NCBI GenBank assembly: GCA_002104945.1
Contig: MCFH01000020.1
Span: 496,001 to 560,000, forward strand
DNA length: 64,000 nucleotides
Source: Piromyces finnis finn
Taxonomy: Eukaryota > Fungi > Neocallimastigomycota
Direction of reading: 5' to 3'
Under the pieces are notes generated by a model. It did not search any database. It had not been told where the DNA came from and saw only the letters and a program-made list of their open reading frames with translations. Below are positions 19,796 to 27,069 of the stretch, in pieces. Every line of letters begins with the position of its first letter. Positions within the stretch are counted from its first letter, which is position 1. The translations under genes and the position numbers were made by a program.

Positions 19796-19835
<40 letters not shown>

Positions 19836-20066
19836 TACATAATAATTACTAATATTTAATATTTATTTTATACATTTTCGTTCTTTTTTTTTTTTTTTTT
19901 TTTTCTTATATAATATATATAAGATAAAGTAAATCGATTAAAAATAATAGAGTAAAAAGGAAATTAGGAGAAAAAAAAATAAATTTCCCCCCTTTGAATA
20001 ATACTACTAATGAATAACTATTTAATAAAAAAAAATTAGTAAAAAAAAAAAATTTAAACTGAAAAT

Positions 20067-20094
<28 letters not shown>

Positions 20095-20100
<6 letters not shown>

Positions 20101-23100
20101 ATTTAAAGTAATAAACTGTAATAAAATAAGCAATGTAATGAAAGTAAATACAACAAAAATATTATAATAAAATAATTTTCTATTAGCTTTATATAAGGAT
20201 TCTATTTTTGAAATTAAAATATATATGATAAATAATAATTTAGTATAAAGTTAGGAATATAAAAAATATAAAAATAGTTAATGTTGAATATTATAAAAAA
20301 CGAGAATATATCTACCTTTTAATCCTTTAACGGCATCTTCAGAATTTTTATATCTTATTTTGTAGGAGGATATCATTAAATCCTTTTCATGACATGGAAT
20401 ACATTTAGAATCAATATATGTACTTGCATTAACCGTATTTATTTCAGTTGTACTTGTGGACTGATTAATACCACGAGTATTAATCATCATATTTTCATAA
20501 CTATTATTATTCATATTATTCTTTTTATCATTTACATTATTTTTAGATGGTCTAATGGATGAGATAGGCGGTAAATTGGAATTATTTTGATAATTATATT
20601 TTTTATTTAGACTTGAACTAAAATGATTTAATTCAATAGTATTTTTATTATAGCTTTGTCCAGGTAAAATATGTAAATCTAAAGCCATTAATAAATCAGT
20701 AGTATCAGAGAGTGGGTAACTATTAAGAAGAATATCTGAATCCAAAATTTCAAGAGCAGTGGGTCTTTCCATTGGATCCGGATGCAATAAACTTTTTATT
20801 AATAAAAACTATTTGAAAAAAAAAAAGTTAATATTTTTAATATCTATAACATTAATAATATTTATTTATCCGTATACATTCATATTTTGAATAATGCTAA
20901 ATGTATTAATATAATAAAATTAATACTTACTTCTCTTGGCCATGTTTTGATGAATTTGTCTGAAAATTTACCTTGACGAATATCCATTAAAGTTTTTACC
21001 CTTTCCATACCTGTAGAAAATGGACATAGCATTTCAAATAAAAGAATACCCAAGGAATAAATATCAGTTTTATTGTCATAACAGCGATTTTCAGATAATT
21101 GTTCTGGAGAAGCATACAAATAAGTTCCAGCACCCATTAATTCATCATCTTCTTGTTCGAAATAACTTGAGTCTGTTACAATTTTTTTGGCTAAACCAAA
21201 ATCACCAATTAATATATGGTGATCCTCTTGTAAGAAAACTAGATTTTTACATTATAATATAATAGTATATTGATAGAAATGTTTTTTTATATATGAATGA
21301 AAATTTTTATATTTTTAGTTATGAAATTAATAAAAGTTAATTTCAAAAATTATTATGATATAATTATAATGATAAAAACTATTGAATATTTACTATTTGC
21401 TGGTTTAATATCACAATGAATAAAACCATTCCAATGAATATGAGCTAAACCTTGAACAATTTGTTTAAAAATCTTTATTACAATTTTACGATCAATCATA
21501 GGTTTAAAAGAGGTGTTTCTTTCTTCTAACCAAGCCTGTAATGTTTTTCCAGATACAAATTCCATTTGAATTAATAAAACCGAGCAGAGTTTTTTGGATG
21601 AATCCTCATTTTTTTGTTTCTTATAAAAATCAGGAGTAGTGACTTCATTTTGCTTATTACTACTTTCATATGGTTCTTTATATGAGATGGATTTTGTTAA
21701 TGTGTTTTGGAAGGTATTATCAAATACTGAAGAGAAGTGATCTTGTTCACGGGAATATTGATATGAATTATGAAAAGTAAATTCTGAAGTAGTCGTGGTT
21801 TTATTAATAATTGATGGATTATCAAATGTTCCAAAATTATTCTTTTTATATGATTCATTAAAAAAGAGGGAACTTTCAGTAATATTGATTCCAGTTGAAA
21901 AAAAAGAGGAAGAAATATTATTCTTTTTCTTTTTATCAATTAATCTTGTTCTACTATTTTCATCAAAACTACTAGATAAAATGTATTCTTTTTTCATAGG
22001 ATTTATTTCTTTTTTTGATGTATTATTGAGAATACTTTCCGTATCTTTATTGAATGTTATAGAAGAAGGAATAGTTTTAGTATAAAAATTAGATAATATT
22101 GAAGTACTATCACTACAATTACTACTACTATTATAATTTTCTTCAATAACTGAAAGCGTAGGAGAATTTATCGAACGATATTTTTTAATTGAATTTATCA
22201 CTGATAAACCTCCAGTGTCGAAGTAATTAGTATTATTATTAGTATTATTTGTTGTCAAATTATTTATATTTTTGAAAGATGGGTTTTTATTATCATATTT
22301 TGAATAATTTCTATTTCTCTTCTTTAAAGTATGCTTTAATAAGCCTTTAGTATATAAAATGATTAAATATTAATGATATTAATGATATATACTCCAAATT
22401 TATTTATATTTATGTATTAATATTAATAAAATTTGCTCTTACTGTTATTTTTCCTTGCAGACTTTCTTTTTTTTGAAATTTTATTAGATTTTAATTTTTT
22501 ATTTATTATTTCCGAAGTAATAGATGAATTTGAATTCGAATTATTTAGTACATATGATAATGATTTATCATTATTAGTCTTGGGTTCTTCAAATAAAATT
22601 ACAAAAGAATCTTCATTTTCTGTAGCAGAAGTTTTATCTGAAAAATACAATAAAAATTTTTATAAATATTTTATAAGATATAAGAATTTATATGTTTAAA
22701 ATTATATATTAATGCCAATAATAATAAAAAAAATAATGTACCATTTAATTCTAGTTTTGGTTGTTGAATTTCTTGGCTTAATTTTGAAAAATTTTTAGTT
22801 CCATTTATTTTTTCATATCCTTGATGAATAAAACTAAGTTCATCCTGACTAGTAATACTATTATCAATATCTATATGAATATCATGACTCTTACCTTCAA
22901 AAACAATTTCAATATCATCATTTTCTTTTAAATAAGAAATATGACTTGTATCAATATCTGAAGTTATATCTTGACTAAATTCATTATCATTGCTTTCATT
23001 ATCTGTATCGTTATCACTTTCATTAATTATTTCAATATTATCATTTTTATTAAAATTATTTAAGTTATCATTATCATAATCACTATCATTATCGCTGTCA

Positions 23101-23408
23101 TTTTCACTACTACTATTATTTTTAATAATGGAATTTTCATTGTCAAACTGATCACTAGATAAATCTGAATCATTATATTCATCAGAATCAGAATCACTAT
23201 CATCAGTAATTTCTAATGCTTCAATCCATGCACCATGATATCTTACAATATTTGGATGATTAGATATTCTAGCAAAGGTTTTTACCTCTTGAATAATACG
23301 AATATCCTTAGTAGATAAAGTATTAATAGGAAATTTGGAGGTAGCATCACTTAAACTAGTTGACGCCGACATATATCTATGATGACAAGCTCGATGTGGT
23401 ATAGTTTT

Positions 23409-23452
<44 letters not shown>

Positions 23453-24935
23453 CATTAATTATATTAGAATTTATATTATTATATGTAGTTTGTAACGACG
23501 TATTTATATTTAAATTTTTATTAGTTTTATTAGTATTACTTGTATGAGTTGTAACACTATCTTTATTAATTATATGATTTAATTCATCTTGATCCGATGA
23601 TAATGGTAAACCATTTTTAGGTAAGCTAGTATGAGAAAGTGGAGCATCAAAAAACTTGGAATTCATTACACATTCCATAGTATTTTTAGGATCACATTGA
23701 AGTTTAATCTTTTTTATTGCATAAAATTGACCATCAAGCTTATTTCTAACTTGAAATACTGAACCAAAGCCACCTTTTCCTAATTTTGTAATTTCTTCAA
23801 ATTCATTTTGATATCTTGAATAAGTTGTTTTACTAAATGATTCTCCATAATTTTCTTCATTATTGTGAAAGTGTTGTTTTAAAGGTGAAATATAAAATGA
23901 AAAATTTTGAATAGACGATGGAATATATGCAGGAATAACCTCAATTTTTTCTTTCTTAATAGGAATTGAAGTAGATGGCTTGAAAGAGTTTATTGAAGAT
24001 AAATATTTTGAAGGAGTTTCACCATTAATTTCATCGTATTTCTCCTCATCTTGATATATCATTGTTTTCTCTCTAAAAATACTTTGGCTTGTTTCATCTT
24101 TTATTTGATCATTTTCCCAACTAGATACATTTTCATCGAAGCTTTTATTATTGGAAATTGATTCATTTTTTTTATTAATATTTTTATCTTTAATTTTAGT
24201 GTTTGAAAAGCTTGTTTCATAATTTTCCAGTTGCCTGTTACTTTTCTTAAGACTTATATTATTCTCGTTTCTTCCTTTATTAGATAAAAAATTCAATTCA
24301 GGATTGGCATTAAATAAAGGATTATTTTCCAAATTTAAAGACTGTGTTCTTTTCAAATGAGCATAATTATCTCCATCAAAAAATTTAGTTTTTACTGGTT
24401 CATTGGATTTTAACTGAGAGATAATAAAACTTGTTGAAAAGATTATAAGATAAGTTTTTTTATTTTTTACAAGAAAATCTCTTGAAAAATTACTAATTAA
24501 AATGTTTGCTGGAAACGTTTTACCATCCTTTTTAAGTCCATAAACGAAATGTGTGGTATCTAATATAGAAGAAGGATCTATTCTTAATTGATTAGATATT
24601 TGGTTTCTATAACTATCTGTTAATAAAATATCAAAAGTCTTCTTTTCAATCTAAATTACAAATATAAAATAAATATAATATAATATAAATATACTTATTA
24701 TACTCCTAACTTTGTTTTGAAATTAATTATACACTATACATACTAGTTCATTATCTGTCCAACCGAAAAGCCTTGAAGCTTTTGAATTAATTTTTAATAT
24801 AACACCATTTTTATCACAAATTGTTATTGCTTCTGGTATTGAATTTAATGTATCAGAAACTAATTTATTCACAATTGAATTTGAGGATCTAAAAGTATTA
24901 ATGGTATTTTCATTTTTTATATTTGATAATAACAT
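20095..24935 (-). CDS. eIF2-alpha kinase (HRI-like) with N-terminal PAS domain and C-terminal transmembrane tail (1384 aa)
   Basis: 7 exons (24935-24744, 24650-22742, 22637-22443, 22344-21394, 21238-20931, 20808-20316, 20201-20095) total 4155 nt in frame with GT-AG ends. Kinase motifs RYQNEFEEITKLGKGGFGSV, YAIKKI, EVKTFARISNHPNIVRYHGAWIE, LLIQMEF, HCDIKPAN, IGDFGLAK, GTYLYASPEQL, DIYSLGILLFEM and FSTGMERVKTL. Confidence 0.9.
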
Positions 24936-27069
24936 TAATTTAAAAAAAAAAAAAAAAAAAATCTTTTGATATAGTTATCCTTTAAAAAAATTTATTATAA
25001 CTCCAATAATTATAATAAATATTTGTTTTATTGGTTGTTTTAGAAATATTTAAACTTAATAATTTTTTTTTTTTTTTACTTTTTATATTTTCTAATTTTT
25101 ATGTTATTTAAAAATATAAGTTTTATATTTTATTAGTAATTATTAAAATTTAGTATTTTATTGTTGAATTTAATTGTTTGTTTGTTCGTTTTTTATTTTT
25201 AATATTTTATTATGTATATTTATATATTCTTAAAAATAATAAATATCAATAAGAAAATATATTTCACAATAAATAATAAAAGGTATATCTTTTTTTTTTT
25301 TCTATTAATGATTATTATTTTATTATGAGTATACAATATTTGAATGTTTATATACAATACTTTTTTGTTTATTTTTTATATAATATAATAATATTTATAT
25401 ATTATAAAATAAAAAAATATATTAAGTTTATCCATAAATGTTGTTGTTTTATTACTCTTATAATATGTAATATTTAAATTATTTTTTTAAGATAAGAATA
25501 TCGAAATAACAATATAAAATAAAACTGATAATAATAATGTACTATTTTATTAACATATTATAAAATTAATTCATACTATTATTATATAAGTTTTATTTAT
25601 ATTATTTTATTCTTCTAATTGTTGCTGTTTTATTGCTCTTATTATTTTGCTGTTGTAATTATTAAGTGTAACTATTTTATTTGTTTAATTATATTATATT
25701 CATATAACAAAATATAATTGTTACTATTTAAATATAATTATTGATAGTAAATTTCTTTTGAATTAAAATAATTCAAAATTGTTAAAAAATTATTTTATAT
25801 TTTATTTTAATATATAATATTTATTTATTTAAAAAAAAAAAAAGTGAATATATAATCATTTCTTTTTTTTAAAAAAAAAAAAAAATCAATTAATCATTGA
25901 ATAAAATATTATAAATATATTTCAAATAGAAAATTATTGACTGGTATAAATATTAAAATAAAATATAATATTGGATTTTAACTCCTTTATATATATATAT
26001 ATGTTATATACTTGCTTATGTTTTCTATTATTATTTATTCTATGATTTGATATCATTAATAAAAAGTGCTTAAAAATATAAACTCTTTCATTTTTTTAAT
26101 AAAGAAAGTTCAATGGTGGTATATGTATCTTTTTTTTTTTAATATTAAAAATAAAGGGAAAAAAAAAAGAAAAGAAAAATAAAAAATAAAAATAAAGAAA
26201 AAAAGTTATATGTATGAATATAGTATTAATTTAAGTAAAATAATAATACTATATTAAATGAAATAATAAAAACAAACGTCTCAAATTTAATATTTTAAAA
26301 AAGAAAAGGAATATATTTAATTATTATTAAATTTATATATTACAAAAAATAAAATATAAAATTTAAATATAAAAAAAATAAATTAATAATTTAATTCAAT
26401 AATAATAAAATTAAAACTTAATTACTATTGTAAAATAATAATTATTATTTATTTAAAAGAAAAAGGAAAGGTTTAGGAAAAAAAAAAAGGTAAAATAAAA
26501 TATAAAAAAGAAAAAAAAAAAAGATTATTTTTTCAATTAATTCAAATTAATATTTTAGTATTAAAATTTAAAATGTAAAATATATATATATTTAAAATTT
26601 TAAAATTTAATTAAAAATACTTGTCATACAATAAAAAAAAAGTTTATCAATATATATTATAAATAATTTTAAAAAAAAGTACTGCGTTTTTTTTTTTTTT
26701 TTTTTATTTTATTTTTTTATCAATATTTTAATAGTAATGATTATAAATATAAATGAAAAGCTAATACAAAAAAAAAAAAAAGAACATGTATGTTAATGAA
26801 AAAGGAAAAATTAAAATTTGAAAAATATGAATTTTTAAATAATCTATAAATTTAATATTTAAGAAATGAGACTTTAATATATTAATTAAAAAAAATAAAA
26901 AATAAAAAAATCTAGATTTTAGATCTTTTTAAACAAAAAATGAATGTTAATATTTAAATAATGGATATCAAATTTTAGTTAGAAATAAGTTAAGCAGAAG
27001 TATGAATAACTTATGAATATAAATTCTTGATAAAGAAATATTATGATATATTTTATACATAATTTATTA

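Follow-up and report, generated by a model that had tools for sequence, protein, structure and literature searches.

The question raised by a kinase gene of the gut fungus Piromyces finnis, which lies on the minus strand of contig MCFH01000020.1 (assembly GCA_002104945.1, positions 496,001 to 560,000; this whole stretch of 64,000 nucleotides is called the window, and positions are counted within it), is whether its protein ends in a membrane anchor encoded by a short last exon. A first-pass annotation, made from the letters alone, had proposed that a donor at 20315 (GTAGAT) and an acceptor at 20202 are joined in phase and give the kinase a hydrophobic C-terminal tail. Our analysis confirmed that this last splice of the kinase gene is real, the coordinates and the phase of the proposal hold, and transcript contigs show the joint. 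The best explanation of all observations, and a probable one, is that the gene encodes a 1384-residue PAS/eIF2-alpha-type kinase with a predicted C-terminal tail anchor of the endoplasmic reticulum (ER) type. The gene model is as follows.

Positions 24935 to 20095, minus strand: coding region of the PAS and eIF2-alpha-type kinase, based on contig splice joints, an exon-by-exon check of frames and stops, and Pfam matches to PAS and a split Pkinase.
Positions 24935-24744, 24650-22742, 22637-22443, 22344-21394, 21238-20931, 20808-20316 and 20201-20095, minus strand: the seven exons.
Positions 20202 to 20315, minus strand: last intron, 114 nucleotides, GTAGAT...AATAG, phase 1, 13% GC, based on the contig joint 20201/20316.
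Positions 20095 to 20201, minus strand: exon 7, 35 codons and a TAA stop (20097-20095), with a genomic A-run directly after it.
Positions 20278 to 20280, minus strand: read-through stop 12 codons past exon 6, reached if the last intron is retained; unused in the assembled transcripts.

The summed exons amount to 4155 nucleotides, i.e. 1384 codons plus stop, and no exon has a premature stop in its expected phase. The last base of exon 6, at 20316, is a G in phase 1; the donor follows at 20315, and the acceptor AG lies at 20203-20202. Exon 7 starts at 20201, where G and AA are joined to a Glu codon, which is followed by 34 residues (20098-20199, minus strand) and the TAA.

The evidence for splicing comes from transcript contigs of four runs (X1 to X4; one organism, three studies; the RNA label of the runs is a guess), which were aligned to positions 19800-25200 (5,401 letters). 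Each of the four runs contains 65–71% of the sampled sequence words. The joint 20201/20316, with 114 letters skipped and CT..AC on the plus strand, is present in one X1 contig (study P1) and in one X2 contig (study P2), and hence in two studies. The same contigs also lack the introns 20809-20930, 21239-21393, 22344/5-22441/2 and 22638-22741 and show no mismatches, and the intron 24651-24743 is missing from separate contigs. Because six GT..AG introns are gone at 100% identity to the exons, the contigs derive from spliced messenger RNA (mRNA). The contigs of X3 and X4 reach no further than 20368 and 20331, respectively, and are uninformative for the last joint. The depth of the bins from 20162 to 20342 matches the prediction from the spliced contigs alone, which leaves no unspliced contig there. 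Reading of the mRNA through to the stop at 20278, which had been named as the outcome that would speak against the hidden exon, is thus not the case in the assembled transcripts.

The public model of this gene is P0123 ('kinase-like protein [Piromyces finnis]'), whose N- and C-terminal parts are identical to exons 1, 4 and 6. It skips exon 7, using the same last donor with an acceptor at 20018, and ends in ...GLK-VIH. Two of its features concern us here.

Positions 20007 to 20018, minus strand: far acceptor (AG 20019-20018) and mini-exon V-I-H-stop of the public model, from the end of P0123 and a check of the sequence.
Positions 23289 to 23540, minus strand: 84 codons taken out as an intron by P0123; contigs cover 23467-24650 and hence contain 23467-23540.

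The far-acceptor joint is absent from the contigs of all four runs, those of X3 and X4 ending before it. The annotated intron 23289-23540 is not supported either; the contigs break in an Asn-codon repeat (23264-23466), so that their support is confined to 23467-23540 of the removed stretch. The 84 removed codons include the residues directly ahead of the conserved ...EVKTFARISNHPNIVRY segment. The lengths add up from P0123 to the corrected protein as 1268 - 3 + 84 + 35 = 1384. The model of Piromyces sp. E2 (PIROE2DRAFT_54356, P0005) likewise misses the tail exon and ends at a read-through stop just past the donor. The public P. finnis model of this stress kinase is hereby corrected for one missed last exon and one false intron, and screens for transmembrane helices among predicted proteins of these AT-rich genomes will miss members with mis-annotated short terminal exons.

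The end of P0123 might be taken to indicate that the anchor is optional, i.e. that retention of the last intron (...GLK-GRYILVFYNIQH, a peptide whose first codon begins with the last base of exon 6) or use of the far acceptor (...GLK-VIH) gives a soluble isoform beside the anchored one. This would be compatible with a tail-anchored kinase and has a precedent in DMPK, which occurs in spliced tail-anchored and soluble isoforms (PMC2778554); furthermore, rare variants drop out of contigs. However, neither alternative was found in the contigs of the four runs, the depth over 20162-20342 is fully accounted for by the spliced contigs, and independent contigs of complementary DNA (cDNA) from three other species all have the anchored form. 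As P0123 contains another intron that is contradicted by RNA, its 3' end is probably a prediction error too, and we regard an additional soluble isoform as unlikely.

The protein part encoded around the last junction can be described by two features.

Positions 20104 to 20175, minus strand: predicted transmembrane helix of 24 residues with a grand average of hydropathy (GRAVY) of 2.15, based on hydropathy, a gapless alignment and an AlphaFold2 model of the orthologue P0122.
Positions 20317 to 20403, minus strand: juxtamembrane stalk, encoded by the last part of exon 6, with the motif C-x2-C-x2-K-D-x2-I, based on alignment A1 and the P0122 model.

In the spliced frame the hydrophobic stretch of about 24 residues ending 2 residues before the stop was found as proposed. 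A basic cluster K-A-N-R-K (20190-20176) precedes the helix, and N-K and the stop follow it. The best 19-residue segment on the Kyte-Doolittle scale scores 2.68 in exon 7 and at most 1.4 in exons 1 to 6, in which hydropathy detected neither a second transmembrane segment nor a hydrophobic N-terminal leader. The protein accordingly shows the sequence features of the tail-anchored topology that had been suggested for it, namely a single segment of transmembrane grade, 2 residues to the stop, a non-hydrophobic N-terminus and basic residues on the N-side of the helix. Across the window gene and its orthologues, the net charge of the flanks is +1 to +4 on the N-side and 0 or +1 on the C-side, values that would agree with a predicted positive-inside orientation.

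In alignment A1, the stalk columns C71, C74, K77, D78 and I81 are invariant from gut fungi through Gonapodya, Polychytrium and PAS kinases from metagenomes. The cysteine pair of the stalk could be sensitive to metals or redox state, or could form a dimer contact. The AlphaFold2 model of P0122:1440-1572 comprises a disordered linker and then one helix (72-132), which extends from the C-x2-C motif through the transmembrane segment with predicted local distance difference test scores (pLDDT) of 83–98.

Hydrophobicity as stand-alone evidence for the tail was rejected. The GC content of the window is 19.5% and that of exon 7 is 15%, which is intron-like, and a score of 2.68 or more occurs in 6% of the window's stop-free stretches of at least 34 codons and in 3% of stop-free peptides drawn at random with the composition of introns. 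A chance rate of 3–6% in the null model is weakly significant, and about 20% of such chance stretches reach the weaker 19-residue score of 2.0. One might therefore suppose that the C-terminus is no anchor at all, but an AT-rich 3' by-product, a degron or an oligomerisation helix of a soluble kinase, in particular as read-through of introns in the fragmentary gene models of relatives also yields hydrophobic-looking ends. The tail is judged to be real because it is conserved in orthologues and paralogues, hydrophobicity alone being a weak argument.

Conservation of the tail in orthologues was one of the checks suggested beforehand, and all six orthologous sequences have a hydrophobic tail. Their helices are 23–26 residues long with a GRAVY of 1.9–2.5, a basic cluster lies ahead of the helix, 0–2 residues separate it from the stop, and a polar N or S is found at the same helix position. 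Five orthologues retain the exon with 0–2 residues between helix and stop, two of them represented by genomic DNA, the other three by spliced cDNA. In Piromyces sp. E2 (L001, KZ150924.1), a GT..AG intron of 143 nucleotides (L001:11070-11212) is followed by a tail exon (L001:11213-11316) in another frame; as 143 is not a multiple of 3, the tail can be read only after splicing. Although 9,683 of the 17,074 bases of this locus are N, the tail region is readable. The second genomic case is a fungus from metagenomes (L002-L008) with an intron of 102 nucleotides (L002:6590-6691) and a tail exon at L002:6692-6795. In both cases the intron agrees with that of the window gene in position and phase. In two further species, spliced cDNA contigs encode kinase C-terminus and tail in a single open frame (L013:1455-1565, identical in L014, and L015:950-1045). 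Finally, P0122 is a full-length, cDNA-derived protein of 1572 residues from a cluster of 20 members, whose sole segment of transmembrane grade is at 1548.

At the DNA level, exon 7 is 70–77% identical among the three genomic sequences (z 5.5–7.8 against shuffles), and the identities of the intron (57–61%) and of the 3' flank (44–58%) are at shuffle level. Such a conserved island between an unconserved intron and an unconserved flank argues against a by-product of AT-rich DNA, as does the conservation of length, basic N-flank, polar N/S and stop position in the six orthologues. In addition, the homologous helix of a paralogue, described below, has 150–190 residues after it and was called transmembrane by TMHMM in a published set (PMC10512342). 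A C-terminus without anchor function is, on this evidence, very improbable.

Orthologues were collected in several ways. A metagenome scan with exon 6 gave only 3 loci, all of them informative, and the loci L010-L012 stop short of the 3' end. The word search with exon 2 used a length window that left out full-length orthologues and gave fragments and the paralogue group; full-length models were reached by a second word search with the 997-residue paralogue P0013.

What kind of kinase, then, is carried by this tail? In the Pfam matches, a PAS domain lies at the N-terminus and the protein kinase domain is split into two widely separated parts, with positions 1-41 of the Pkinase profile in exon 2 and positions 72-128 onward in exon 4, such that an insert of several hundred residues lies between strands of the N-lobe (subdomains IV-V). 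When the C-lobe encoded by exon 5 is compared to solved structures, the top matches are PERK (4.9e-17), GCN2 (2.5e-15), HRI (4e-14) and PKR (2e-9), and the first kinase outside the eIF2-alpha group is NEK2 (9e-9). The gene also falls inside the tree of eIF2-alpha kinases, so that its earlier assignment to this family stands. The catalytic residues are intact (YAIKK, H-C-D-IKPAN and DFG).

The catalytic loop (exon 4, 21400-21420, minus strand) reads H-C-D in P0123, P0005 and P0122, which are all three group-1 sequences examined, and H-R-D, not H-C-D, in the paralogue group and all outgroups examined. By sequence, the tail-anchored group is a 'non-RD' eIF2-alpha-type kinase, and such a loop may allow activation without phosphorylation of the activation loop.

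Identity with PERK was rejected since the N-terminus is a PAS domain, there is no hydrophobic leader and the single helix is located at the extreme C-terminus. Identity with HRI was rejected as well: the N-terminal HRI domain PF22949, which is annotated on the animal HRI matches, is absent from P0122 and P0123 according to Pfam.

The window gene does not stand alone. A second gut-fungus group was obtained by word search and includes P0013 (P. finnis), P0121 (Neocallimastix californiae) and many proteins from metagenomes and metatranscriptomes. In an alignment of five orthologues and eight paralogues, the paralogue helix aligns without gaps to the window helix after the same C-x2-C-x2-K-D stalk, and complete paralogues run on for about 150–190 residues past the helix. 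The P. finnis paralogue also has an intron (L016:4038-4160) whose position and phase match the window intron, the exon ending in ...GAA G before GTAAAT and the next one starting with AT TCT.... In the paralogues P0013, P0009, P0012, P0015, P0018 and P0019, the C-terminal 60 residues contain a conserved motif of the type F-V-V-T-Q-T-L-S-I-N-Y-F-Y-K-S-R-T-I-T-V-T-R-T-K after a Ser/Thr/Asn-rich spacer.

In a maximum-likelihood tree, the window group and the paralogue group are sisters (95, starred) within a clade (99, starred) that also contains soluble kinases from Gonapodya, Polychytrium and metagenomes and is set apart from HRI and GCN2. In the outgroup kinases, the chain stops at the basic cluster that marks the start of the gut-fungus helix, or shortly past it, and no segment is of transmembrane grade. 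As the nearest soluble relatives lack the helix and both paralogues have it together with the same intron, the simplest reading would be that the helix was gained once on the gut-fungus stem and that the gene was duplicated afterwards, which makes the anchor datable. One copy would now end at the helix and the other carry an exoplasmic extension, whichever state came first. Gut fungi would thus possess two predicted membrane-tethered PAS eIF2-alpha-type kinases, where the 2021 catalogue lists a single one for each species. Their predicted biogenesis class (tail-anchored versus single-pass with an exoplasmic tail) and their catalytic loop set the two copies apart, which makes them a natural pair for studying the effect of tethering.

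That catalogue is the study of Swift et al. 2021 (PMC10512342), in which PAS proteins with PERK-like kinases and a transmembrane helix near the C-terminus were described in four gut fungi, P. finnis among them. These proteins have an N-terminal PAS domain, no signal peptide and a TMHMM helix near the C-terminus, and their authors proposed cytosolic (e.g. redox) sensing. The novelty implied for a membrane-anchored kinase of this kind therefore does not extend to the architecture, which was already published, and concerns the strict tail-anchored copy. Only models with a predicted transmembrane helix were taken for the published set, with one candidate per species (PMC10512342). The window gene was presumably excluded because its public model lacks the helix, and MycoCosm entry 367815 of P. 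finnis in that set is taken to be the paralogue P0013. In a literature search, no paper was found that describes a tail-anchored eIF2-alpha kinase as such.

The published 'PERK-like' kinases and the window kinase share the clade, the PAS domain, the insert-bearing kinase, the lack of a signal peptide, the stalk and a helix behind an intron of the same position and phase. They differ in that the published type has about 150–190 residues past the helix with a conserved Ser/Thr-rich region, so that it is single-pass with co-translational insertion being possible, whereas the window type has 0–2 residues past the helix (a strict tail anchor), a kinase insert of far greater length and an H-C-D loop where the published type has H-R-D. 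What is added here is the second paralogue with its corrected 3' end, support from RNA and several species, the shared intron and a dated helix.

With PERK/EIF2AK3, TgIF2K-A and T. brucei eIF2K2, the window protein has in common that an insert-bearing eIF2-alpha-type kinase sits on one membrane helix. PERK is the best solved-structure match of the window kinase, but the tree sets the gene apart from the PERK-like row. PERK is a type I protein: it has a signal peptide, its IRE1-like sensor is luminal, and its helix lies in the middle (PMC10512342); in the window protein, by contrast, nothing is predicted to be luminal and both sensor and kinase would be cytosolic. A cytosolic sensor of the soluble type N-terminal to the kinase is shared with HRI/EIF2AK1 and the HRI-like kinases of fungi and chytrids; HRI proteins were the commonest word-search matches outside the gut fungi. 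HRI, however, has no membrane anchor, while the window gene lacks PF22949 and is found in a separate starred clade. The nearest outgroup are the soluble kinases of zoosporic fungi and metagenomes (Gonapodya P0124, Polychytrium P0135, P0125, P0127 and P0128), most of which have a PAS domain and all of which have the C-x2-C-x2-K-D helix.

Outside the family, the tail-anchored isoforms of DMPK (PMC2778554) are likewise Ser/Thr kinases with a coiled-coil or helical stalk and a C-terminal anchor encoded by the last spliced exon. DMPK nevertheless belongs to the unrelated AGC family, and its tails are alternatively spliced and directed to the ER or to the mitochondrial outer membrane, whereas no alternative tail was seen in the contigs of the window gene.

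In tail-anchored proteins the transmembrane segment lies less than about 30–40 residues from the C-terminus and leaves the ribosome only after termination; such proteins are inserted post-translationally, by GET/TRC40, EMC or SND or unassisted. In the proposed layout of the window protein, an N-terminal PAS domain would be followed by a kinase split by a very long insert, a disordered Asn/Ser-rich linker and the C-x2-C-x2-K-D helix, which is predicted to continue across the last exon junction into the 24-residue transmembrane helix and to end 2 residues before the stop. With the helix still in the ribosome at termination, insertion of the window protein would have to take place post-translationally, by a GET/TRC40 or EMC route. 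Everything ahead of the helix, from the PAS sensor through the kinase to the stalk, would then face the cytosol, as the positive-inside charges suggest, and essentially nothing would lie beyond the membrane. Held at the membrane next to a stalk that is prone to dimerise, the kinase would be restricted to two dimensions, which would favour the dimerisation that activates eIF2-alpha kinases and would place the phosphorylation of eIF2-alpha at the membrane surface. Local control of translation at the membrane, as envisaged in the first-pass annotation, is a plausible possibility.

The destination of the anchor is a separate question. According to PMC7446849, greater length and hydrophobicity distinguish the tail anchors of the ER from those of mitochondria and hydrogenosomes, which are shorter and moderately hydrophobic and carry basic C-terminal elements. 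The hydrogenosomal and mitochondrial segments listed in that work have 20–23 residues and a GRAVY of mostly 1.4–1.7, and their C-terminal elements have 5–11 residues with a net charge of +1 to +4 (its Table 5). In the window group, the C-terminal element is unconserved and comprises 0–2 residues, its net charge being 0 or +1. We therefore favour the ER, or else a later endomembrane, as the most likely destination, because the helix is long and strongly hydrophobic, a basic C-terminal element is lacking and the exoplasmic tail of 150–190 residues in the paralogue needs Sec61; we put this assignment somewhat above even chances.

The anchor could also be real and destined for the outer membrane of the hydrogenosome, or for some organelle other than the ER, in which case it would couple the state of that organelle to translation. 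Hydrogenosomes do occur in gut fungi, the hydrogenosomal outer membranes of Trichomonas hold tail-anchored proteins (PMC3174187, PMC7446849), the targeting rules are leaky and the basic residues on the N-side of the helix would fit as well. Set against the anchors compiled in PMC7446849, however, helices of 23–26 residues with a GRAVY of 1.9–2.5 and C-terminal elements of 0–2 residues look different, and the long region past the helix in the sister paralogue implies a secretory route, so that such an organelle is an unlikely destination.

Returning to the ER-type tail anchor, a number of points weigh against it. Exon 7 is intron-like in composition, and such DNA often encodes hydrophobic peptides. 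Insertion into and location in the membrane are predictions, and the targeting rules used for them were worked out in yeast, mammals and Trichomonas, where they do not hold strictly either (PMC7446849). The AlphaFold2 model represents a monomer without membrane, was made on the 13 rows of A1 and shows helical propensity only, and the tree was made by a 'quick' method. The transcript evidence consists of contigs, in which rare isoforms, isoform proportions and transcript ends are hidden, and two of the four runs stop short of the last junction. Lastly, with its H-C-D loop the kinase may be regulated otherwise than the classical eIF2-alpha kinases and may even act on another substrate.

A bolder version of this reading is that the tail-anchored H-C-D copy is the first eIF2-alpha kinase with sensor and catalytic domain both on the cytosolic face of the ER or the hydrogenosome, having arisen after gain of the helix by a soluble PAS kinase and a split into two tethered forms. 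We consider this doubtful. If it were true, gut fungi would have a spatially restricted stress response on membrane-bound ribosomes in place of the luminal sensing by PERK.

Some minor observations concern the transcripts themselves. The stop codon of exon 7 is adjoined by a genomic run of about 27 A (20066-20094), where the transcript contigs end, and genomic A and poly(A) are indistinguishable at this point. One X1 contig contains a joint that skips 514 bases (22508/23023), with the ends TT..CA and only 21 letters on its shorter side; in this low-complexity sequence, a chimera of the assembly is the most likely cause, not a splice. The contigs of run X4 (study P3) show mismatches to the window at 22801 (C>T) and 23094 (G>A), and this run probably comes from the same species but a different strain or isolate.

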